This document shows positions 13,888 to 60,784 of a stretch of 64,000 nucleotides of DNA, piece after piece. How positions within the stretch are numbered: the stretch's first letter is position 1; each line of letters opens with the position of its first letter. A model generated the notes under the pieces. The model searched no databases and was not told the DNA's origin. It was given only the letters and a program-made list of their open reading frames with translations. Source of the stretch: Phaeosaccion multiseriatum (taxonomy: Eukaryota > Protista > Ochrophyta, other classes); the NCBI GenBank assembly GCA_965112735.1, contig OZ218965.1, positions 1,426,001 to 1,490,000 of the forward strand. The letters run 5' to 3'. The translations under genes were made by a program, and so were the position numbers.

Positions 13888-16226
13888 GTAATTGTAACGG
13901 AGGAGGAGGGAGAGGATGAGCGGTACGCGAGACGTAGGAGTGGAGAGATGGAGGAGTCTGCTTCTTTGCTGCCCCTCACACTCACCTTACCTAGCGAGGC
14001 AAGTGCAGTCAGCGAGGGAGACACTGCTGCTGTACCACCAACAGCTTTGGCTTGTCCGGGCTTCCTGTCGTTGCAAGGGTCGCCGCCCTCTAAAGCACCG
14101 CGCTCGCCTGATGCACGTTCGATATCATCGCAGCAGCGTGAGCCGAAGCCTGATTCAGCTTCTCATTCCGGCCCAGAGTTCGGATCCGCGTCGGGGTCGG
14201 GGTCAGGGCCAGGGTCAGGGTCAGGGTCAGGGTCAGGGTCAGGGTCAGGGTCAGGGTCGGGTTCATGCACCCTCTCCAGTGGGAGTGAACAAGACTTTAC
14301 GGATGAGACGGACGAGGATGAGGATGAAGACGAAGACGAAGATGAGTACTGTGGCGCACCTCGCCTTGTGCGAGCAGTGGCACACTTCGAGGCCACTGAT
14401 GCCTCTGAACTTGCGCTCAGAGTTGGAGATGTTGTCGAGGTGAGTGAGAGGGTGAGTGAGTGAGTGAGTGAGTGGGTGAGTGAGTGAGTGAGTGAGTAAG
14501 TGTGAGCGTGAGTGAGTGAGTGAGTAAGTGTGAGCGTGAGTGAGTGAGGGAGCAAGTGAGGAAGAGAGTGAAGGAAGGGAGTGACGAAGTGGCGGAGTGA
14601 GTGAGTGAGTGAGTGAGTGAGTGGGTAAGTGAGTGAGTGAGAGGGTGAGTGATTGAGAGGGTGAGTGATTGAGAGGGTGAGTGATTGAGAGAGTGAGTGA
14701 GTGAGTGAGTGAGTGAGTGAGTGAGTGAGTGCGTGAGTGAGTGAGTGAGTGAGTGAGTGAGTGAGTGAGTGAGTGAGTGAGTGAGTGAGTGAGTGAGTGA
14801 GTGAGTGAGTGAGTGAGTGAGTGAGTGAGTCAGTGAGTGAGTGAGTGAGTGAGTGAGTGAGTGAGTGAGTGGGTAAGTGAGTGAGTCAGTCGAACATTGT
14901 CGACGCGGATGAAGAAGTGAGCGATGGACCGACCACCGCGATAGAGCATGTCACAAGTCACAGGGAATGAGTAGAGGACAAAGGGAGGGAGGGACAAAGG
15001 GGGGTTGGGGTGGCTTGATCTCATGCCTGAGGTAGTTTGCAGTTTGAATATAACCCACGCAACACGTAAGTAGTCTTGCTTTGACATACTTCAGTACTAA
15101 TGTTGTGGCCTTACGGTCGTCTTCTTTGTGTGTACCAAAATCACACCTTTGAGCACCCTTCTCCCCCACCGGCCAGGTGATTCGAGAAACCAGGTCTGGT
15201 TGGTGGCTCGGTGTTGTGCTGCCCACATGGAGTGGCGGTGACGGCAGTAGCGGGGCGAGTCGTGAGAAGGGGATGGGGGACGCCGGTGGTGGTGGTGGTG
15301 GTGGTGGTGGTGGTGGTGGTGGTGGTGGTGGAGGAGGAGAAGGAGGAGGAGGGGGAGGAGGAGGGGGAGGAGGAGGAGGAGGAGGAGGAGGAGCGGAAGA
15401 AGCAGAAGGAGGAGGAGGAGGAGGAGGAGGAGGAGGAGGAGGAGGAGGAGGAGGAGAAGGAGGAGGAGGAGGAGGAGGAGGAGGAGGAGGAGGAGGAGGA
15501 GGAGACAGTGTTAATGAGGGTATGAGCACAGGAGAGGGAGAGGTGGGAACGCAGAGGGGGGCGGGAGGGAGAATGGAAGAGGCAGGCAGGCAGCCGGGGC
15601 AGGTGGAAGAGGAGCAAGAGGAGGAGGAACAGGCGGGGGTGGGGGAGAGGGACCAATGCGGCGGCGCAGACAAGCAGCAGACGCAGACCCAGGAGCAGCA
15701 GTTGGGTGTACAGCAAAGAAATGAGGAGGAGGAGGAGGAGGAGGAGGAGGAGGAGGAGGAGGAGGAGGAGGAGGAGGAGGAGGAGGAGGAGGAGGAGGAG
15801 GAGGAGGAGGAGGAGGAGGAGGAGGAGGAGGAGGAGGAGGAGGAGGAGGAGGAGGAGGAGGAGGAGGAGGAGGAGGAGGAGGAGGAGGAGGAGGAGGAGG
15901 AGGAGGAGGAGGAGGAGGAGGAGGAGGAAGAGGAGGAGGAGAAGGAGGAGGAGGAGAAGGAGGAGGAGGAGGAGGAGGAGGAGGAGAAGGAGAAGGAGGA
16001 GAAGACCGAGGAGGAGACGGAGGGGGCCGTGGCAGAAGCGCGTCATCTGATGAAGGGGTGGTTTCCGTGCACTTTTGTAGAGTGGGTGGAGGACCCCCAA
16101 GCGCAGACAGAAGAGTGGGTGGACGACCCCCAAGGACAGGAACCGGGCAGCAGCGGGAGTAAGGAGGGGGGGGATGCGAGGACCGCGGAAGGTGTGCTGC
16201 TTTCATTCCCCTCAGCCAATTATTAA
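7071..16226 (+). CDS. STE11/MEKK-type MAP3K Ser/Thr kinase with long low-complexity region and C-terminal SH3 domain, ~8 exons
   Basis: [84 protein letters not shown]3 parts: [41 protein letters not shown]. Approximate exons: 7071-7751, 8104-8179, 8691-8866, 9053-9208, 9405-9586, 9819-11905, 12223-14439, 15177-16226. That kinase and SH3 belong to one gene is inferred from continuous splicing. Confidence 0.8.
14440..14888. repeat. (GAGT)n array starting at the splice donor
   Basis: Visible GTGAGTGAGT run beginning at the GT donor. Confidence 0.95.
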
Positions 16227-16343: not shown

Positions 16344-16737
16344 CCCTAACCCTGAATTTATGGTCATAAAAATGAGACATTATTTTTTCGAAGGGCCAAA
16401 ATCGAGGTTTCCGACCGTCATTTTTTTGCGTCCTTGGAGTGAGCATTAGAGCTCATTCTTGACTACACCTCCACGTGCGGATGATGCAATCACTGGTCGC
16501 GTCGTCATTTGAGGGCGATGCCAAAAACAGGTTAATGTCATATTCTCGTCGGCGCCTCACACGACGAAGGCATCAGTGGATTGCATCATCCACACGTGGA
16601 GACGTAGTTGAGAGTGAGCTCAAACTCCAATTCTAAGGACGAAAAAAAATGACCGTCGGAAACCTCGATTCCGGCCCTTCGAAAAAAATAATGTCCTATT
16701 TGTATGACCTTAATTATGACATTAATCAGGGTTAGGG
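16344..16737. mobile_element. 394-bp foldback MITE, piggyBac-like (CCC...GGG ends, TTAT TSD), with telomere-like termini
   Basis: Long imperfect inverted arms, e.g. TTCGAAGGGCCAAAATCGAGGTTTCCGACCGTCATTTT versus AAAATGACCGTCGGAAACCTCGATTCCGGCCCTTCGAA. Ends are CCCTAACCCT / AGGGTTAGGG. TTAT at 16340-16343 and 16738-16741. Confidence 0.8.
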
Positions 16738-17121: not shown

Positions 17122-18564
17122 TCAGTCGGGGTAGTAAAACACCTCAAGCCCCTCGGGTAAATCTTCAGGCGGTGGTAAGCTCGTGAAGTCACTCGCGACT
17201 ATAAGCTCCGTCAGGCCGGCAGGTAGATTCTGTAACGGGCACGAGTAGTTCCGTCCCACCTTTAGCGCCCGGAGGGAGGCGGGCAGGTCCAGAGGGTGGT
17301 TAAAGTCATACCCCAGTTCCAACTCCTCTAAACCGCACGGAAGTACCAAGTGCTGATTAAACCGAAGGGTAAACACGATCTTCTTCAGCGAGGCAGGCAG
17401 GGCCAGAGGGAGGTTGAAGGCAGATCCCATCTTCACGTCCTCCACACCACAAGGAAGGACCAGGTGCTGATTGAACCTCGCTGCCGTGTTAAACTTGATC
17501 CTCTTCAGCGAGGAAGGCAGGTCCAGAGGGAGGTTAAAGGCACGCCCCATCTCTACCTCCTCCACACCACAAGGAAGGACCACGTGCTGATTGAACTTCT
17601 TGCCAAATTTGATCTTCTTCAGCGAGGCAGGCAGCGGGTCCAGAGGGAGGTCAAAGTCACCCCCCATCTCCACCTCCTCCACACCATCAGGAAGGACCAT
17701 GTGCTGATTGAAACTCGAGTCCCAGGCAAAACGGATCCTCTTCAGCGAGGCAGGCAGGTCCAGAGGGAGGTTAAAGTCACGCCCCATCGCCACGTCCTCC
17801 ACACCATCAGGAAGGGCGATGGGCTGATTGAAGTGATGCCAAAATTGGATCTTCTTCAGAGAGGCAGGAAGCTCCAGAGGAAGGTTGAAGCCACGCCCCA
17901 TCTCCACCTCCTCCACACCGCAAGGAAGGACCACGTGCTGATTGAAATCCCCGCCAAATGTGACCTTCTTCAGCGAAGCAGGAAGCTCCAGAGGGAAGTT
18001 AAACTCATACCCCATCAGCACCTCCTCCACTGTACTGGGCAGAGCTACGTCGGCCTTATTGAAATAGTCGGAGAAGAACACCTGCTTGACGGATGCTGGT
18101 AGCACCGCCAGGACCTTCGTCACAAGAGCCTCGTCGCCAGTTTTCATGTCCTCGTCCCTCGGATCTTCCCACCGGAGTCCAAGTTTCACAGCCGCCACGG
18201 CAAACGACCCTAGCCCCAATACAACTTCACTCTGCTCGTTCTGCTGCTCTTCCCGCTTCATCCGAATCCTCCCAGACCTTCGAGCCCCCTCCACAGCTGG
18301 TCTTCCCACCTCAGCTATAGTTGCAGCAGTACCACCCGCTCCCTCGGATAAGGAAGGGGCAGGACGACACCTCTCCTCTTCTACCTTTTGCTGCCTCAGC
18401 ATGCTCAGCAAACGAAGCTGAACACATTCAGGCATGGCGCCGCTCATCACCAGAGTGCGGAAGGTGCCCTCATCGACCTCCCTGCACACTCCCCACAGAG
18501 CCTTGTCCGAAGTTAGGCTCGCCACAGTTCTCAAAGCCGCTCTCGCATCCCTATGCTCAGGCAT
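17122..18564 (-). CDS. Intronless FNIP-like (LRR-type) repeat protein A, 480 aa
   Basis: About 14 repeats of ~19 aa (FNxxxxLPxxxxxxxxG) alternating FNQHVVLPCGVEEVEMG and FNLPLDLPASLKKIxF. Paralog at 23493-24950. Confidence 0.85.
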   Translation of the reverse strand: MPEHRDARAALRTVASLTSDKALWGVCREVDEGTFRTLVMSGAMPECVQLRLLSMLRQQKVEEERCRPAPSLSEGAGGTAATIAEVGRPAVEGARRSGRIRMKREEQQNEQSEVVLGLGSFAVAAVKLGLRWEDPRDEDMKTGDEALVTKVLAVLPASVKQVFFSDYFNKADVALPSTVEEVLMGYEFNFPLELPASLKKVTFGGDFNQHVVLPCGVEEVEMGRGFNLPLELPASLKKIQFWHHFNQPIALPDGVEDVAMGRDFNLPLDLPASLKRIRFAWDSSFNQHMVLPDGVEEVEMGGDFDLPLDPLPASLKKIKFGKKFNQHVVLPCGVEEVEMGRAFNLPLDLPSSLKRIKFNTAARFNQHLVLPCGVEDVKMGSAFNLPLALPASLKKIVFTLRFNQHLVLPCGLEELELGYDFNHPLDLPASLRALKVGRNYSCPLQNLPAGLTELIVASDFTSLPPPEDLPEGLEVFYYPD

Positions 18565-18656
18565 TGCTTCACGAGACTTGTCCGTGACATGTACTCAATT
18601 CTTCATTTATTTTCTTTTTTCTTTTTTATTGACGTCACAGCTGGTGAGAGGAAATT

Positions 18657-18722
<66 letters not shown>

Positions 18723-18729
18723 TCCTTCT

Positions 18730-18976
18730 TCGGCTCCAGGCGAGGTTTCTCGGGCTTTAGGGCCGTAGCCCCCTCCAGGCTTCGGGCTTCTGGCCGCAGG
18801 CCAGTGGTCAGGCTTCAGGCTTCTCAGGCTGGGAGAAAAACGGGGGACTTGGCAGGCTTTTCGCTACTTTCTGCAGGCTTCTGGCCGCAGGCCAGCCGCA
18901 GGCTTCTTACTTTCGGCCGCAGGCCGCCGCAGGCTTCTGCTTTATCGGGGGCCCGAGAAACCTCGCCTGGAGCCGA
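18730..18976. mobile_element. 247-bp MITE (copy 1) with perfect 26-bp TIR TCGGCTCCAGGCGAGGTTTCTCGGGC
   Basis: TIRs at 18730-18755 and 18951-18976, internal repeated AGGCTTC motifs, near-identical copy at 22764-23016. Confidence 0.9.
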
Positions 18977-18997
18977 CGCGCTGTCTGCCCTGGTCAC

Positions 18998-20086
18998 TCA
19001 GTCCTCGCACTCGCAGGGGTGACCATTGGCGTGCACCCACTGCTTCATCTCCTCAAAGGCGGCAGGGGGCATATCCAAGCAATCAGCATATTCGTTTTTC
19101 ACGACTTGTGGGCATGCCCTCCTATCCCAGGGACACATGACCTCCTCCGAGCGGAGCCACTTCAGGACAGAGAGGCTCTTACCGCCACGAACTGCTGCAG
19201 TAGTGACATCTTCATTCCACCCGCACAGCTCCCGTGCGTTTGCATGCAGCCACTGCAGCACTTCCAGATTGCCTTCCGTGGCCGCCCAGAAAGCCCCATC
19301 CCTCCACCCGCTGGAGTTACCTGCCGCCTCCATCTTAGCTCTGACCTTGGGATGGTGCACAAGCATGTCCAACGCGCGAATGCGCCCCGCTCGCACAGCC
19401 CCCACCCACATACCAGACTTAGGAGGGCCCTCAAACTCGTCGGACAGCAGCCACGTAAGAACCTCCACATGGCCGCACTTGCCAGCTTCGAGACAAATGA
19501 AGTGCTGATCCCACGGGGACCGCTCCTTGTTGGGCAGGTCCTCCGCTCGCAGCCATTGGAGGATGCTCAGTGCATGCCTTTCATTCCTCACCGCAGCTAT
19601 GCATACGGCCCAACCCCAGGCACACCCCATGCTGTGAAGAGCCTTGCAAATACGCAAGTCTCCGTACTGTGCCGCAGCCTCAAAAGTCTTCACACTCAGC
19701 TCATACCCGTACTTCCTGGCCCACCTCAAACGTTCCTCAGACTCAACCACACTCCTGATCCGGGTTGTCTTGGCCGGATGAAGACGTCTGTAGTGCTCCT
19801 TCCACTCCTTGCTCACCGCCGCTACGAACAAGTCGTGGCCCCCACCAGTCCACTCCATCACGCTACTGAGCAATACATCCTGGGCCAGAGCCTCTTCACA
19901 AGCTTCGAAGGTCTGAGCATCGCTTCCCTCGCCTCCAGCAAGGTCGGCGGGGCCGGTAGAAGCTACCACAGCGGCACCGGCACCACCGCCTCCATGCAAA
20001 GTCAGACATACTTCCCCTGCCGAGGAGTCGGTGGGTGGAGCTGGCTGGAGCCTTTTGCCGCCATGCTTTCGGCTCGGTACGTCCAT
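18998..20086 (-). CDS. Intronless ankyrin-like repeat protein A (GNLEVLQWL/CPW type) with F-box-like N-terminal segment
   Basis: AAQYGDLRICKAL, CGHVEVLTWL, EGNLEVLQWLHAN and LKWLRSEEVMCPWD motifs. The ORF is open to 20266; start at MDVPS (20086) is assumed. Confidence 0.8.
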   Translation of the reverse strand: MDVPSRKHGGKRLQPAPPTDSSAGEVCLTLHGGGGAGAAVVASTGPADLAGGEGSDAQTFEACEEALAQDVLLSSVMEWTGGGHDLFVAAVSKEWKEHYRRLHPAKTTRIRSVVESEERLRWARKYGYELSVKTFEAAAQYGDLRICKALHSMGCAWGWAVCIAAVRNERHALSILQWLRAEDLPNKERSPWDQHFICLEAGKCGHVEVLTWLLSDEFEGPPKSGMWVGAVRAGRIRALDMLVHHPKVRAKMEAAGNSSGWRDGAFWAATEGNLEVLQWLHANARELCGWNEDVTTAAVRGGKSLSVLKWLRSEEVMCPWDRRACPQVVKNEYADCLDMPPAAFEEMKQWVHANGHPCECED

Positions 20087-20676
20087 GTCTTCTGCGGTCC
20101 CACTCTGGATGACTGGTTGGCACGTATGATGTGCGGTGTGGGGCAGGTGATGGGGGGGAAGAAGCCTTTTAGCTTTCCTCAGCGAAGCCTGGTACGACGA
20201 GAGAAGAGAAGGGGGAGGGGGATTGACAGGACGGAAATGACACGCAGTGTGAGGAAAAGGCGGCATCGGTACCTCCCCTGCTGTTGGGCCTTTGCCGAGA
20301 CCCCCCCCGAAGAGCCGAAGAGAAGGGGAGGGGATGGAAGCTGAATTCGATGGACTCGATCACCATCTCTCCGCACGGCCTCGACTGCTCTAAGTCTCCT
20401 CCAGCCTGCACTCTTCAGCGCCACACTCCTACCTGCAGCTTGGTGGAAAACGGTGCGTGGAGAGTGAGTTGAGAGGGATACAAGGCAAGTTGGTCGTTCA
20501 GCGTCGGCCTGGTAGTGGACATCTGTAGTCGCCACACGACCCGAAGAGACGGAGCGAGCGCGGGGCCGGCGCAAACAAGGCCGCCATTGCTGCATGATGG
20601 CACAGAGAAGGTGGGGCCATTAGTCACTTCTTTGAAGCGCTGCAGATACTCTGGCGAAGTGGGCAACACACACGCC

Positions 20677-21711
20677 ATGGCAGAGGCAGAGGATGCCTCC
20701 AAGAGGCAGCGCCTGGGCACGGAGGAAGGTGTGACAAGTTGTACCGCGGAGACTGCCGAGGGAGAAGGTGCTGTGCAGGAGACCTACGTGGCCAGTGCCA
20801 AGGCCCTGGGAATGGAGGAGGTCCTGCAGAAAATCATGCCCCTTGTGGGGAAGGGCCGCCACGTCTTCACCGCCACCGTATGTAGGGAATGGAAAGAGCA
20901 CTACAGCGTGGCCCACCCTTCAGCCGAGACTTCCCTTGCAAGCGTGGTGGAGTCTGTCAGGTGCTTGCGGTGGGCCAAGGAGAAATGTGGGTACGAGCTG
21001 AGTGTGGACACTTTCAGAGCGGCGGCAGAGTACGGAGATGTGAGCGTGTGCGAGGAGCTTCACCACATGCACTGCCCCTGGGATACAACGGCCTGTAGGG
21101 CGGCTGTGAGGAATGCTAGGCATGGACTGCGTATTCTCCAATGGCTGCATGGACTGCGTTTTCTCCAGTGGCTGCGATCCGAGGACCTGCCCAACGAGGA
21201 GCAAGGTCCTTGGTCACAGGATTGGGTCGGGTACTCAGCTGGCGAGTGCGGCAATGTGGAGGCTCTTACGTGGCTGCTGTCCGACGAGTTTGAGGGCCCT
21301 CCTCAATATTATATGTGGAAGGGGGCTGTAAAGGGGGGGTGCATTCGCGCGTTGGACATGCTTGTGCACCATCCGAAGGTAGCTGAGATGGGGGCGGCTG
21401 TGGGATGGACGAGGGGGGCTCTCTGGGCGGCCCAGGAAGGCAATCTGGAAGTGCTGCAGTGGCTGCATGCAAACGCACGGGAGCTGTGCACGTGGGATGA
21501 AAATGTCACTACTGCAGCAACAAAGTGGGGGAGCCTCTCTGTCCTGAAGTGGCTCCGCTCGGAGGAGGTCATGTGTCCCTGGAACGAGCGCGCATGCCAA
21601 CAGTACTGGAAAGACGCATATGGTGATGACTGGGATATGCCCCCTGCCGCTTTTGAGGAGATGAAGCAGTGGGTGCACGCCAATGGTCACCCCTGCGACT
21701 GCGAGGACTGA
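20677..21711 (+). CDS. Intronless ankyrin-like repeat protein B, divergently oriented paralog of A
   Basis: Same motifs and a near-identical C-terminus (DMPPAAFEEMKQWVHANGHPCxCED). The ORF is open from 20515; first in-frame ATG is at 20677. Confidence 0.8.
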   Translation: MAEAEDASKRQRLGTEEGVTSCTAETAEGEGAVQETYVASAKALGMEEVLQKIMPLVGKGRHVFTATVCREWKEHYSVAHPSAETSLASVVESVRCLRWAKEKCGYELSVDTFRAAAEYGDVSVCEELHHMHCPWDTTACRAAVRNARHGLRILQWLHGLRFLQWLRSEDLPNEEQGPWSQDWVGYSAGECGNVEALTWLLSDEFEGPPQYYMWKGAVKGGCIRALDMLVHHPKVAEMGAAVGWTRGALWAAQEGNLEVLQWLHANARELCTWDENVTTAATKWGSLSVLKWLRSEEVMCPWNERACQQYWKDAYGDDWDMPPAAFEEMKQWVHANGHPCDCED

Positions 21712-22763
21712 CTGGCAGGAAGCGTTTCGAGATGGAGGCAGGACGGGTAGGAAGGGAGGCGGCCCTGAGAAGGCGGCGACAGCCTCTTCGAATAGGGGGG
21801 GCAACAAGTCGAGGTGAGCGGGGCGGATGGGAGTGCTCTCTGGCTTGGCGGTGCTTTCGAGGTTACCGAATGCCCATCTGCTGCTTGTTCTGCTGCTATC
21901 TGTTCTCTGATCCTCTTCCCTGCCCCCTTCCCCGCCTCTGCCTGCCCCCTCTTGCCCCGACCCCACAGCCCGTCGCCCAGACCGACCCAGCCCCCTTTGG
22001 CTGCTCCACTCGAGCAAGACGGTGGTGCTTCAGGGATGATGCAAGCACGGGGTACACACGTCAGATGGGGGCAGCGCGGGCGGGGCAGCTGAGCGAAGCC
22101 GCAGAGGAGATGAAGAAGGACGGGAGGAAGAAGGAGGAGGCGGAGAGGAAGAGGAATGAGGTCCAGGATGAGACTGAGACGGAGGGGGGACAGAAGCGGA
22201 AGGCAGTCTGTATGATAGGGGTGTTATTTTTGCAAAGTGGAGTTGGGGGTGGGTGAATAGTGGTGGTGCCCCACTATTGCTATTGCATGCGCTCCTCCAG
22301 AGCGTTTGGGAGTGGAGCAGGGCAGAGCATTGCGGCCCTGGCTTTGGGGAAGGCGCCCACCCGCCCGTGCAGAGCAGCGAGGCAAGCGGAATGGGCCAGG
22401 CCTTGTGGGGGCATGCGTGATTAGGGTTAAGGCAATGAAGAGCTCACACAATAGACTTCCTGCTTGGCGCTCTCCGCGGGGGGTTGAATAAGGGCAGCAG
22501 TAGAAGATGAGAAAGGGGAAGGGCGTTTCGAATAAGTCATTGGAGAGGGGTGCGTGGCACTGCTCGACCAAAGGCTTCGCAGAGGGAAAGGGCCAAGTCA
22601 AACTGTCTATATATTATACGTACGTGTTAAGCTTTATGGTATCCATTGATTCGGCTGGAAGAAGAAGCACACTTCTCACAAAGAGAGAGGGGCTGAAGTG
22701 AAGCCCCTTTCTATGGCACCGTGTGCGAAACAAGACGATGCTTGACGCAGGAGGGGCCGCGCT

Positions 22764-23016
22764 TCGGCGGCGAGGTTTCTCGGGCTTTAGGCTTCTGGGC
22801 CGTAGCCCCCTCCAGGCTTCGGGCTTCTGGCCGCAGGCCAGTGGTCAGGCTTCAGGCTTCTCAGGCTGGGAGAAAAATGGGGGACTTGGCAGGCTTTTCG
22901 CTACTTTCTGCAGGCTTCTGGCCGCAGGCCAGCCGCAGGCTTCTTACTTTCGGCCGCAGGCCGCCGCAGGCTTCTGCTTTATCGGGGGGGGCCCGAGAAA
23001 CCTCGCCTGGAGCCGA
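22764..23016. mobile_element. 253-bp MITE (copy 2), direct orientation relative to copy 1
   Basis: Differs from copy 1 by a 4-nt deletion (TCCA) in the left TIR, a 7-nt insertion, one C/T change and a longer G run. Right TIR is intact. Confidence 0.9.
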
Positions 23017-23492
23017 CCTTCTCTACAGATAGCAGTCTACCAATTCAAACACTGCTAACCAACCTCGCTGTGCACCATCTGCCCGCAGGGGAAGGGGGTG
23101 GGGGAGGCAGACCCGCAACAACCAGACAAGAGAGGGAGTGATCAAATATGCATCTGAGTCGGCGACCTTCGGTGCAGTGACGGATCAGTATGTATTGCCC
23201 CTGACTGAGCTGACTACCCTCAGCACTGCCAACATGCTTCACACGGAAACCTTCCCCAAAGGCTCACCCTATTCCTACTCAGACCAAAAGATAGAGGGGC
23301 AGACACGCACTTGGAGAAACCGCCGTGTCCATATGACAGGGGAGTGGGGCGACGCTCTTCAGGCAGGAAGTGCCCTGACTTGGCCAATCTCACTCCCAAA
23401 GTCCCCCTCCCCTCCTCCTCTTCTCGGCCCTGTCCTTCTACCGCCATCGTCCTCTTCCTCTCACCGTCCTCAGCCGAGTCGCATCATCCTTT

Positions 23493-24950
23493 TTAGTAGA
23501 GAAAGAGCTTCATCCCTTCGGGTCGATCTGCAGGCAACCGACATTTCCCCCCAACTGTGAGCCTCTTCAGGCCAGCAGGTAGGCTCTCCACAGGGCAGGT
23601 GTAATTCGGTCCGAACTTCAGAGCCTGCAAAGAAGCAGGCAGGGCCAAAGGGAGGTCAAAGTGACCCCCCATCTTCACGTCCTCCATACCGCAAGGAAGC
23701 ACCATGTGATGATTGAACTTCGAGTTCCAAGTAAAACGAATCCTCTTGAGCGAGGCAGGCAGGTCCAGAGGGAGACTAAAGTCACATCCCATCGCCACCT
23801 CCTCCACACCGCACGGAAGGACCACGTGCTGATTGAACCTTGCGCCAAAAATGACCTCCTTCAGCGAGGCAGGGAGATCCAGAGGCAAGTTGAAGTCATC
23901 CCCCATGTGCACCTCCTCCACACCGCACGGAAGGACCACGTGCTGATTGAATCTCGCGCCAAATTTGATCTTCTTCAGTGAGGCGGGCAGGTCTAGAGGG
24001 TGGTTAAACTCATACCCCATCTCCACCTCCTCCACACCACAAGGAAGGACCACCTGTTGTTTGAACCTCCCGCCAAACGTGATCTTCTTCAGAGAGGTAG
24101 GCAGATCCAGAGGGAGGTCGAAGTCACCCCCCATACGCAGCTCTTCCAATCCAGAAGGAAGGACCACGTGATGGTTAAAGTGAAGGCCGAATTGCACCTT
24201 CTTCAGAGAGGCAGGCAGTACAACGCTTCGGTTGAACACCCCCCCAAATCGGATCCTCTTCAGGGACGAAGGGAGGTCCAGAGCGCGGTCAAAGTTCCCA
24301 CCCATCTCAAACTCCTCCACACCACAAGGAAGGACCATGGGCTGGTTGAATCTCTCGCCGAATTTGACCTTCTTCAGCGAGGCAGGAAGCAAGACCTTCT
24401 TATTGAAGGCTTCTCCGAACGTGATTTCTTCCACTGTGGCAGGTATACACACGTTGCGCTGATTGAAAAAGGCGGAGAAGATCACACGCTTGACTGATGC
24501 TGGCAACAGCGCCAGTACCCTTGGAACAAGCGCCTCGTCTGCAGTTTTCATACCCTCGTCTTTCCGATCTTTCCAACCAAGGCCAAGCTTCACAGCCGCC
24601 ACGCGAAAATACCCTACCACATTCACCTGCTGGTCCTGCAGCTCCGCCTGCTTCGCCCGAATCCGCCCAGACCTTCGAGCCCCCTCCACAGCCGGCCTTT
24701 TAGCCGCAGCAGCAGCACCCGCTCCCTCGGATAAGGAAGATGCTGGAGGACGACACCTCTCCTCTTCTCCCTTCTGCTGCCTCAGTCTGCTCAGCATACT
24801 GAGTTGAACACATTCAGGCATGGCGCCGTTGATCACCAAAATGCGGGAGGTTCCCTCATCGACCTCCCTGCACACTCCCCACAGAGCCTTGTCCGAAGTT
24901 AGGCTCGCCACAGTTCTCAAAGCCGCTCTCGCCGACTTGGGCTCAGGCAT
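23493..24950 (-). CDS. Intronless FNIP-like repeat protein B, 485 aa
   Basis: N-terminus nearly identical to paralog A (ARAALRTVASLTSDKALWGVCREVDEGT), followed by about 15 ~19-aa repeats. Confidence 0.85.
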   Translation of the reverse strand: MPEPKSARAALRTVASLTSDKALWGVCREVDEGTSRILVINGAMPECVQLSMLSRLRQQKGEEERCRPPASSLSEGAGAAAAAKRPAVEGARRSGRIRAKQAELQDQQVNVVGYFRVAAVKLGLGWKDRKDEGMKTADEALVPRVLALLPASVKRVIFSAFFNQRNVCIPATVEEITFGEAFNKKVLLPASLKKVKFGERFNQPMVLPCGVEEFEMGGNFDRALDLPSSLKRIRFGGVFNRSVVLPASLKKVQFGLHFNHHVVLPSGLEELRMGGDFDLPLDLPTSLKKITFGGRFKQQVVLPCGVEEVEMGYEFNHPLDLPASLKKIKFGARFNQHVVLPCGVEEVHMGDDFNLPLDLPASLKEVIFGARFNQHVVLPCGVEEVAMGCDFSLPLDLPASLKRIRFTWNSKFNHHMVLPCGMEDVKMGGHFDLPLALPASLQALKFGPNYTCPVESLPAGLKRLTVGGKCRLPADRPEGMKLFLY

Positions 24951-25278: not shown

Positions 25279-44995
<19,717 letters not shown>

Positions 44996-45479: not shown

Positions 45480-45845
45480 GGCTCTGTTACGTACTACTTG
45501 TACGAAGTATGTGACCAAGAGCGCAAATCTTACCGAGGTCCCAGACGGTCCTCGTTTTCCCTCCTCCTGCACACGCACGTAATACTACGAAGTACACATA
45601 AACCATTGCTAATGTTTACAAAGTCTGTATCGATAAAGTCTATTATTACAAAGTCTATATTGATGACCGGCTTAAAATCCCATAAATACAAATAATTACA
45701 CCCACCGAGCAAGTGTTTGCAGCGCCCTTTCTTTCCCTACCCGGCAGCTAAGAGACTGCCTCTCCTGAACGCACTCACGCTGTTGAAGCCCCCCATGACT
45801 CCATCCACGTGGTGATCCCCGCCCTTCCCTTTCCTCCCCTGCTCT

Positions 45846-46047
45846 TCGGCTCCTGACATACTTCTGAGACAGGCCAGCCCAGAAGCAGGAAGCAGGCCGG
45901 CTGGCGCCGGCCAGAAGCAGGAACCAGCCTTGGCCCTCATCATTGCCTTATTAAAAGGCTTTCCCCCAGAACCTGGAACCTGCCTGGCCGGCTGGCGCCG
46001 GCCAGAAGCAGGAAGCAGGGTCGCCTCAGAAGCATGTCAGGGGCCGA
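45846..46047. mobile_element. 202-bp MITE, 23-bp TIR (TCGGCTCCTGACATACTTCTGAG, 2 mismatches), 6-bp TSD TGCTCT
   Basis: TGCTCT at 45840-45845 and 46048-46053. Shares TCGGCTCC.../...GCCGA termini with the 18730/22764 family and has internal GGCCAGAAGCAGGAA repeats. Confidence 0.9.
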
Positions 46048-46091
46048 TGCTCTCGAAGCGGTGCCCTCCACGTGGATACCGTGACGAGTGA

Positions 46092-59026: not shown

Positions 59027-60548
59027 TCATTTCGCAGGCGCCACCTCAACGGCGCTGTCCTCGGCTTCCTCGTCTTCCTTGTCTTCTTCAATGGAGAGCA
59101 TCCACGGTTCAAACGCATCGCCAAACAAATCCAGCAAGCCATCATGGAGTTTGTTAAAGTTGGTAGTCGAACGCATCACGACCTCCCACTCCTTCATTTC
59201 CGCGTCGGTAAGCAAGCAGGCGTCCAGAGTACTCTCTAAAAGAGCCTGATCGAGTCCCGCGCCAATAAAGACGATTGCTTGACGTCGATCACCCCATTCA
59301 CCAACCCACGCCTTCTTGATGCCGTCACGAAGCTCTGGTTCCCAGTCTTCTTCAGGCCTGCAGGCGTAAAATGTGTGACCAGCACGCATCGTCAACATAC
59401 ACCCAGCTTGAGACCATAGCCCGGCGGCCATAGGGCGCGTTGCAAGCCAGAAATTTCCCTTGGAACGAAGTACGGGTCCAAACGACTTGTCCTTCCTTTT
59501 CGCCTCAATGATTTCCTGTGGCGTGGCTTGATGTATGTCGACGGGTTCATCTTCATCTTCGCCTTCGCTTTCTTCCTTGTCATCTTCCCCCTCCGAGTCT
59601 TCCTCCGCCGCGTCTTCAGGTGGAGGGTCGTCTTGCATCATCAGAAAGCGAGAGTCAAGGAGTCCCCCCAGACGCATGGGATGGAACGGGCGTCTTCGTG
59701 CATAAACGAAGCTTGTGATGCCGTACTCAACCGTTTCGGGCACCGGGGCTCTCTTCCCATTACTAAGGGTCGTCATCTCTCCCAAAGAACGTAACCATCC
59801 TGCAGAGAGAGAAGCGGTTTCGAAATCGAACTTGCCCGTGTTGAGAATCTTGTCCAACGGGGCGACCGAGTGTTTGGTTTGGAGGACCTCGGCAACAGGG
59901 TTCAAAGACTTGACGATCGCACTGATTTTGTCCAACACCTTCTTGGAGACCATATCGGTCTTGTTGAGGAGAATTACGTCGGCAAACTCGATCTGGTCCA
60001 CCATCAAGTTGGTAATCGTACGCTCGCTTCCGTCGTCAAGGATTTCGCTGGACTCGAAGGTATCCAAAAAGTTGAGCGCGTCAACCACCGTCACGCACGT
60101 GTCTAGACGCGCAATCTTGTTGATTCCACCAAGCTCAATCAACGCGTCATACGTCTTCTTGAATTGCTGGTCTTCCTCCGAATCGCCGTGTTCAATCGCG
60201 TCCTGAACAAATTCCGTTGTAAACGTCTCGGCAACTTGCATTGGCTCCGAAATCCCGGTGGATTCAATGATGATGCAGTCAAACGAGCCCTGCTGTACCA
60301 GGTTATAGACTGCCTCCAGCAAATCACCACGTAAAGTGCAGCAGATGCAGCCATTCTCCATCGATACCAACTTTTCCTCCTTCTGGACCATGTTCGTGAC
60401 CAAACCCGCGTCAACATTAAGGGCAGCCATGTCATTCACGATAACCGCACATCGATAGCCATGGTCCTTGGATTGGAGAATGTATTTCAGCAGTGTCGTC
60501 TTGCCGGCACCGAGGAAGCCACTGAGAAGGGTGATCGGGGAGGACCAT
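59027..60548 (-). CDS. COG0523/CobW-family G3E P-loop GTPase (zinc metallochaperone), intronless, apparent 1-nt frameshift near the start
   Basis: PITLLSGFLGAGKTT, NGCICCTLRGDL, IIIESTGISEP, DQIEFADVILLNKTD; CobW_C motifs RPFHP, LRSKG, WSQAG, WGDRRQ. Confidence 0.9.
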
Positions 60549-60784
60549 GACTTTTGCGAAAAGTGAAAATATGAAATCATCCGTGCCACTCCAAACCACT
60601 ACCCCGGTGGGTAAGCACGCGCAAAAGTAAAGATTCATTTAATATTCATATCTTACGGTTACAGATTGTGGGAGGGAAGTTGGGGAAGGCTGGGGGAGGC
60701 CATGGGGGAAGAAAGCAGGCAGGCAGGGAGAGTAGGGAACAGGGAAAGACTGACTGTGAAAGATGCCGGAGGGGGAGGGGGGGG

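Follow-up and report, generated by a model that had tools for sequence, protein, structure and literature searches.

How could two direct copies of a small transposable element come to enclose a pair of genes in such a way that neither copy is bordered by a target site duplication (TSD) of its own, while the outer borders match each other and the inner borders match each other? The question is raised by a block of about 4.3 kb in the ochrophyte alga Phaeosaccion multiseriatum. The block is located in a stretch of 64,000 nucleotides (contig OZ218965.1 of assembly GCA_965112735.1, positions 1,426,001 to 1,490,000), which we call the window and to which all sequence searches refer, except where viral or metagenome contigs or protein look-ups are named. 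It consists of two copies of a miniature inverted-repeat transposable element (MITE) and about 3.8 kb of cargo with two ankyrin-repeat genes, and it lies between two genes coding for FNIP-repeat proteins. When positions 18500-23300 were read and the repeats and flanks aligned, the order was CCTTCT, MITE copy 1, CGCGCT, 3775 bp of unique sequence, CGCGCT, MITE copy 2, and CCTTCT (Table 1). The four hexamers and the two MITE copies had been described in an initial annotation of this DNA, and their positions agree to the base. The further claim that no MITE copy has a TSD of its own is borne out by both flank pairs: neither copy is enclosed by matching flanks, but the outer hexamer matches the outer one and the inner hexamer the inner one.

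Copy 1 starts with TCGGCTCCAGG, and its TIRs (terminal inverted repeats) of 26 bp are perfect. The right, outer TIR of copy 2 is perfect as well, so that the outer TIR pair of the entire unit (18730-18755 and 22991-23016) is 100% complementary. Compared with copy 1, copy 2 has a deletion of 4 bp in its left, inner TIR, one additional 7-bp motif, and three additional G. Together with a single substitution the two copies thus differ by one substitution and three indels. The motif CAGGCTTC occurs six times per MITE copy, on one strand throughout. The motif GCCGCAGGC is found five times in the interior, again on one strand, and the interior is built as an array of these two motifs and is not palindromic. 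Because the internal motifs are all on one strand, the MITE has a polarity, and the orientation of the two copies is genuinely direct. The classification as a MITE is based on the TIRs, on the fixed TSD length of 6 bp, which is seen in the outer pair, the inner pair, and at a sister element, and on the small and noncoding body. Neither a third copy of the MITE nor a transposase or autonomous element was found within the 64-kb window.

The sister element just mentioned is a second TIR element with TCGGC...GCCGA ends, and it had been taken for a relative that demonstrates the 6-bp TSDs of the MITE family. Its TSD, TGCTCT, is indeed perfect. However, the part that it has in common with the MITE comprises only the first eight terminal bases, TCGGCTCC, and its interior contains a different motif, GAAGCAGG, in five copies. 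With only eight terminal bases in common it therefore represents a sister family and not the same family. What it does provide is a calibration of the TSD length of TCGGC...GCCGA elements at 6 bp. The TSDs of all TCGGC elements in the window, CCTTCT, CGCGCT, and TGCTCT (18724-18729, 18977-18982, and 45840-45845), end with CT, which hints at an asymmetric target preference of the form NNNNCT.

The swapped flanks are not a product of chance. As a control, the whole window was scanned for all TCG...CGA pairs that are at most 12 kb apart and of whose first 16 bases at least 12 are complementary. Among the resulting 194 pairs, identity at all six flanking positions was found only at 18730/23016, the outer ends of the unit, and at 45846/46047, the ends of the sister element, and every other pair has at most four identical positions out of six. 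The empirical probability that two hexamers of the window are identical is 0.0012, and that for both reciprocal matches is about 1.5e-6. If a strict rule of CT-ending TSDs is assumed, the values become 0.016 per pair and 2.7e-4 for both. The inner hexamer, CGCGCT, occurs six times in the 64 kb.

What does this geometry tell about the origin of the block? The outer flanks match, and therefore the whole block behaves as a single insertion at CCTTCT. The inner flanks match, and therefore both MITEs carry halves of one former CGCGCT duplication, from which it follows that the donor sequence is circularly permuted in the insert. Very probably, then, the block is one insertion at one CCTTCT site, the MITEs hold the halves of one earlier CGCGCT TSD, and the donor was circularly permuted. 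In other words, the footprint is that of a circle, or of a circularly permuted copy, which contained one MITE with its CGCGCT duplication and was joined to the CCTTCT site. The topology put forward in the initial annotation, a circle-like donor fused to the chromosome through the MITE, is sound in this respect, given the matching outer and inner flanks and the lack of self-TSDs. However, at least three routes yield exactly this product, namely homologous recombination through the MITE, a transposase-driven composite insertion or macrotransposition, and a replicative cointegrate.

The most likely of these, although we favour it only tentatively, is an insertion driven by homology, in which the MITE served as a homology arm and nothing else. 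What we infer for this route is a prior single-MITE allele, a circle or copying step, and a donor locus, which might have come together as follows. At the donor locus, a MITE would have inserted 15 bp beyond the end of gene A, the first of the two cargo genes, and thereby duplicated CGCGCT. The distance of 15 bp is that between the stop codon of gene A and CGCGCT at 18977-18982, the border of copy 1. The site CCTTCT would already have been occupied by a single MITE with an ordinary TSD. The donor region would then have been present as a circular copy of about 4 kb, whose MITE would have recombined with the resident one. In the product, DNA that had flanked the donor MITE on its right would come to precede DNA that had flanked it on its left, which would account for the permutation. 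The outcome would be equivalent if a break in the resident MITE was repaired by copying donor DNA outward from both ends of the donor MITE, with subsequent end joining, and also if a double crossover took place with a tandem donor. In principle, a renewed recombination between the direct repeats could set free a circle with a single MITE, although no such event is seen here.

The homology-driven insertion is supported by the reciprocal identity of the flanks at six of six positions without self-TSDs, by the control scan and the low chance probabilities, by the independent 6-bp TSD of the sister element, by the direct orientation of the copies, and by a cargo that is foreign to the spacer between the FNIP genes. 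The cargo is regarded as foreign to this spacer because both it and its two flanks are unique in the window, in which no other copies of either were found. The demands of the route are small and consist of a circle and 250 bp of homology. Exchanged TSDs are generally taken as the mark of ectopic recombination between copies of a transposon, as described for Galileo of the P superfamily (PMC2775673). Circles are common in eukaryotes (PMC7450558, PMC4028189). Circular intermediates that give rise to permuted duplicates have been documented (PMC7450558), and so have gene circles mediated by repeats in Leishmania (PMC4028189).

Several points weigh against this preference. First of all, the window holds nothing by which the homology-driven insertion could be told from a transposase-driven composite insertion. 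Such alternatives are decided by the composition of the copies: recombination leaves chimeric ones, whereas a hybrid-element insertion, like any model with one donor, leaves identical ones (PMC2775673). In the unit there are only four differences between the copies, one substitution and three indels, and the window contains no third copy from which the parental states could be read. Both outer TIRs are perfect and one inner TIR is damaged, which a mobilisation of the composite would predict likewise. In addition, the window and the viral and metagenome collections yielded no single-MITE allele, no circle junction, and no donor locus. Neither the TIR nor the predicted circle junction had an exact match in viral and metagenome contigs, and within the window there is no empty site, no circle junction, and no extra copy. 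The lone match to the circle junction in the window, with three mismatches, is the right border of copy 1 itself.

A composite insertion driven by a transposase is therefore the alternative to be taken most seriously, and we regard it as quite possible though doubtful. According to this explanation both MITEs descend from one donor MITE, and the cut-and-paste transposase of the family used the outer left and right ends for a transposition that produced a fresh 6-bp TSD, CCTTCT. There are two versions. Either a segment containing the MITE was tandemly duplicated and subsequently moved as a macrotransposon, or a left end and a right end from different sister chromatids were transposed together, as a hybrid element, into unreplicated DNA, after which the flanks were re-replicated and the ends joined as known for maize Ac. 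The perfect outer TIRs, the TSD of the family length around the block, the restriction of TIR damage to an inner end, and the near identity of the two MITE copies would all be accounted for. There are precedents in maize, where composite insertions are bordered by transposon ends and a TSD, contain an end-joined junction in their interior, and are able to leave the site again and reinsert as macrotransposons (PMC4270019, PMC9910405). P elements are known to undergo hybrid-element insertion as well (cited in PMC2775673). However, either two steps, a tandem duplication and a macrotransposition of 4.3 kb, or a rare event coupled to replication would be required. Neither a donor nor a footprint nor an internal junction is visible in the window. 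Furthermore, the window does not contain an autonomous element, and the link between the MITE and a transposase is thus putative.

The initial annotation had compared the locus to a replicative cointegrate of the IS6/IS26 or Tn3 type, in which a circle with one MITE is fused to the chromosome under duplication of the MITE and of CCTTCT. The geometry fits exactly, including the near identity of the copies, their direct orientation, and the reciprocal identity of the flanks, and IS26 cointegrates and translocatable units do place direct element copies around a cargo (PMC4196232). This part of the comparison stands, but the fit does not amount to IS6/Tn3-type chemistry, and among the viable routes this is the least likely one, with a rather small chance of being correct. 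A circular donor would have to exist beforehand, and the transposase of an IS26-type unit is encoded by the element whereas the MITE has no open reading frame (ORF) of its own. Cut-and-paste enzymes can yield replicative products when the cleavage of the second strand fails, as in TnsA mutants of Tn7. However, we know of no eukaryotic family of TIR transposases that forms cointegrates, and a cointegrate explains and predicts nothing beyond what the simpler routes do. It is not preferred because eukaryotic cut-and-paste routes to the same product have been documented (PMC2775673, PMC4270019, PMC9910405).

It is still less probable that the block is an artefact of the assembly, in which a separate piece bearing the repeat was threaded into the chromosome via the 250-bp repeat. 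Both types of junction are exactly those that a repeat-mediated mis-join would generate. Such a mis-join would nevertheless require a piece of 3.8 kb of which both ends adjoin the MITE, and this means a real circle or tandem. In addition, the copies differ at four sites and hence have not been collapsed, and a repeat of 250 bp is presumably short for a modern long-read assembly. Even further down the scale of likelihood is a coincidence, by which two MITEs inserted independently at the same CGCGCT, or at a strongly preferred target, to form a macrotransposon with a fortuitous inner match: the three TSDs of the window all end with CT and some target preference may thus exist, but CGCGCT is rare, an identity would arise with a probability of only 0.016 even among CT-ending hexamers, and positions 1-4 differ among all three TSDs.

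The remaining candidates disagree with the structure itself. An unequal crossing-over between two chromosomal MITEs would, in its simple form, leave an element in the middle whose flanks are mixed. For an inversion, the two MITEs would have to be inverted relative to each other and bordered by reverse-complementary flanks, but they are in direct orientation and their flanks are not of this kind. Long terminal repeat (LTR) elements, including terminal-repeat retrotransposons in miniature (TRIM) and large retrotransposon derivatives (LARD), are inconsistent with termini of the type TCGGC...GCCGA instead of TG...CA and with TIRs of 26 bp, and they would leave the inner CGCGCT match unexplained. 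The primer-binding site of LTR elements typically starts with TGG, but the sequence behind copy 1 is CGCGCTGTCTGCC, and the interior consists of two opposed genes of host type. A Pack-type, transduplicating element would consist of one element with captured gene fragments directly between its TIRs, whereas here both MITEs are full copies and both genes are complete, with an intergenic region between them. Finally, an insertion of the cargo as a transposon into one MITE, or into a dimer of them, is at odds with a cargo devoid of TIRs and with two complete MITEs.

Returning to the homology-driven insertion and its closest competitor, both have relatives among known systems. The composite insertions of Ac/Ds and the Ac macrotransposons of maize (PMC4270019, PMC9910405) resemble the unit in that a host block is enclosed by outward transposon ends and one TSD of the family length. 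In maize, the interior consists of the flanks of the donor elements joined at an internal junction, and the block is later mobile as a unit (PMC4270019, PMC9910405). Unlike here, the two ends are contributed by separate elements that lie side by side, Ac and fAc, and the junction and the progenitor are known. In the present unit both ends are full copies of one MITE, and the inner flanks are the halves of one TSD. Galileo of Drosophila buzzatii, a member of the P superfamily (PMC2775673), shares the lack of self-TSDs, the reciprocal matches, and the short TSD of 6-7 bp. The alternative to be decided is also the same, recombination versus hybrid-element insertion, and chimerism decides it (PMC2775673). 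However, Galileo involves inverted copies and a chromosomal inversion, whereas the unit here has direct copies and represents an insertion that needs a circular or permuted partner.

The IS26 translocatable units (PMC4196232) also have direct elements around a cargo and an identical pattern of flanks. Such a unit consists of one element and the cargo and can join beside a resident element (PMC4196232). In contrast to the MITE, which is noncoding and resides in a eukaryotic host, IS26 has its own transposase of the IS6 family with a copy-in or a targeted conservative mode. Reactions of this type are not known for the transposase family that presumably serves the MITE. The reintegration of extrachromosomal circular DNA (eccDNA), and the circles behind segmental duplications (PMC7450558), are similar in that a permuted copy of a donor is inserted elsewhere. 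In the gene circles of Leishmania (PMC4028189), dispersed short repeats are the substrate for circles with whole genes. The donor and the circle were observed in both of these cases (PMC7450558, PMC4028189), whereas the circle would be a reconstructed one here, and the repeat is a TIR element at which both TSD pairs have been kept.

Table 1. Coordinates of the MITE-cargo-MITE unit, its neighbouring genes, and the sister element in the 64-kb window.
Feature	Position	Strand	Basis
FNIP-repeat gene, intronless	17122-18564	-	Pfam FNIP 3e-44
CCTTCT, outer left flank (one TSD copy of the whole unit)	18724-18729	.	identical to 23017-23022
MITE copy 1, 247 bp, both 26-bp TIRs perfect, lacks an ORF of its own	18730-18976	+	alignment, motif count
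CGCGCT, inner flank	18977-18982	.	identical to 22758-22763
Gene A, intronless ankyrin-repeat protein, 362 aa	18998-20086	-	ORF, Pfam Ank_4 E=2.8e-8
Intergenic region between the divergent head-to-head genes A and B	20087-20676	.	ORF positions
Gene B, intronless ankyrin-repeat paralogue, 344 aa	20677-21711	+	ORF, Pfam Ank_4 ~3e-8
Noncoding 3' flank of gene B, purine-rich low-complexity tract	21712-22757	.	sequence reading
CGCGCT, inner flank	22758-22763	.	identical to 18977-18982
MITE copy 2, 253 bp, seven AGGCTTC motifs, inner TIR damaged	22764-23016	+	alignment, motif count
CCTTCT, outer right flank	23017-23022	.	identical to 18724-18729
FNIP-repeat paralogue, intronless	23493-24950	-	Pfam FNIP 3e-44
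Sister TIR element, 202 bp (with TSDs 45840-46053), TCGGC...GCCGA ends	45846-46047	+	perfect 6-bp TSD TGCTCT

The cargo had been described as two intronless ankyrin-like genes, and the intact ORFs together with the matches to Ank_4 agree with this description. By eye, gene A has an F-box-like N-terminal region. The two genes have 61% identity at the amino acid level and 75.6% at the nucleotide level, with an overall ratio of nonsynonymous to synonymous substitution rates (Ka/Ks) of 0.41. Their divergence is unevenly distributed. Synonymous divergence is saturated in the 5' third, whereas Ks drops to 0.19 in the 3' third. Close to the stop codons the DNA is 88-90% identical, and deeper inside the genes about 70%. 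Such a steep gradient suggests that the two inverted genes are still being homogenised by gene conversion. The gene pair is therefore much older than the MITE event, given the single substitution between the MITE copies. In gene B, a tandem duplication of 27 bp (21120-21173) doubles nine residues of an ankyrin-like helix (HGLRILQWL/HGLRFLQWL). The best relatives in a homologue search with gene B are about 30% identical and come from Tribonema, Chloropicon, Chrysoparadoxa, and virus-like metagenome contigs, where they are described as ankyrin or F-box-ankyrin proteins. Exact-protein look-ups with genes A and B and with both FNIP neighbours returned no record. If the insert contains a donor junction, it would most likely fall into the noncoding 3' flank of gene B.

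The insertion site is intergenic. The unit is located between the stop codon at 23493 of one FNIP gene and the ATG at 18564 of its paralogue, 165 bp upstream of this ATG and beside a (GT)n tract. It had been proposed that a removal of the unit restores an intron-like string. We reject this proposal, since the site is the intergenic spacer between the FNIP genes and no plus-strand gene spanning the unit is evident in the window. With the unit removed, the FNIP paralogues would adjoin at a distance of about 0.9 kb. They have 62% amino acid identity, a repeat period of 114 nucleotides, and an N-terminus that is conserved between both. Their similarity ends exactly at the ATG, and the upstream regions are unrelated. 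Just downstream of the FNIP gene at 17122-18564 there is a foldback-type element of about 310 bp (16379-16691), whose arms of about 109 nucleotides are 84% complementary and which has a T-rich/A-rich border, CATTATTTTTTCGAAGGGCC. It belongs to a family distinct from the TCGGC elements, yet GAGGTTTC is present near its ends.

Some further features of the window lie outside the unit. At 15177-16226 and 25797-27305 there are very long, pure trinucleotide tracts, which would read as poly-Glu, poly-Gly, or poly-Pro depending on the frame. They cause hundreds of spurious BLAST matches to the purine-rich tract at 22104-22188. An apparently intronless gene at 59027-60589 codes for a GTPase of the CobW/G3E family with 520 amino acids, for which the best of the listed matches are fungal, at about 50% identity, with none closer among those listed.

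In general, the structure is a clean further example of events that are known from maize, Drosophila, bacteria, and eccDNA biology, and as a single case it reveals no new mechanism. Because both TSD pairs have been kept, the transfer of a whole-gene cassette to a new locus via a MITE of 250 bp is recorded here with unusual clarity. In this alga, whole genes can thus be moved to another place and duplicated with the help of MITEs, whether these act as portable homology or as the ends of composite transposons. A bolder view, which we regard as unlikely, is that the MITE family routinely makes and moves circles of one MITE plus genes, by a transposase acting in trans or by efficient recombination between MITEs. 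If true, this would be a eukaryotic counterpart of the IS26 translocatable units, shuttling fast-evolving adaptor genes of the ankyrin, FNIP, and F-box-like families between loci. Matched inner flanks that recur across the family would point to a systematic process. They would offer a natural test of recombination versus alternative transposition beyond maize and Drosophila, and they would provide a handle on the spread of large, fast-evolving families of repeat proteins.

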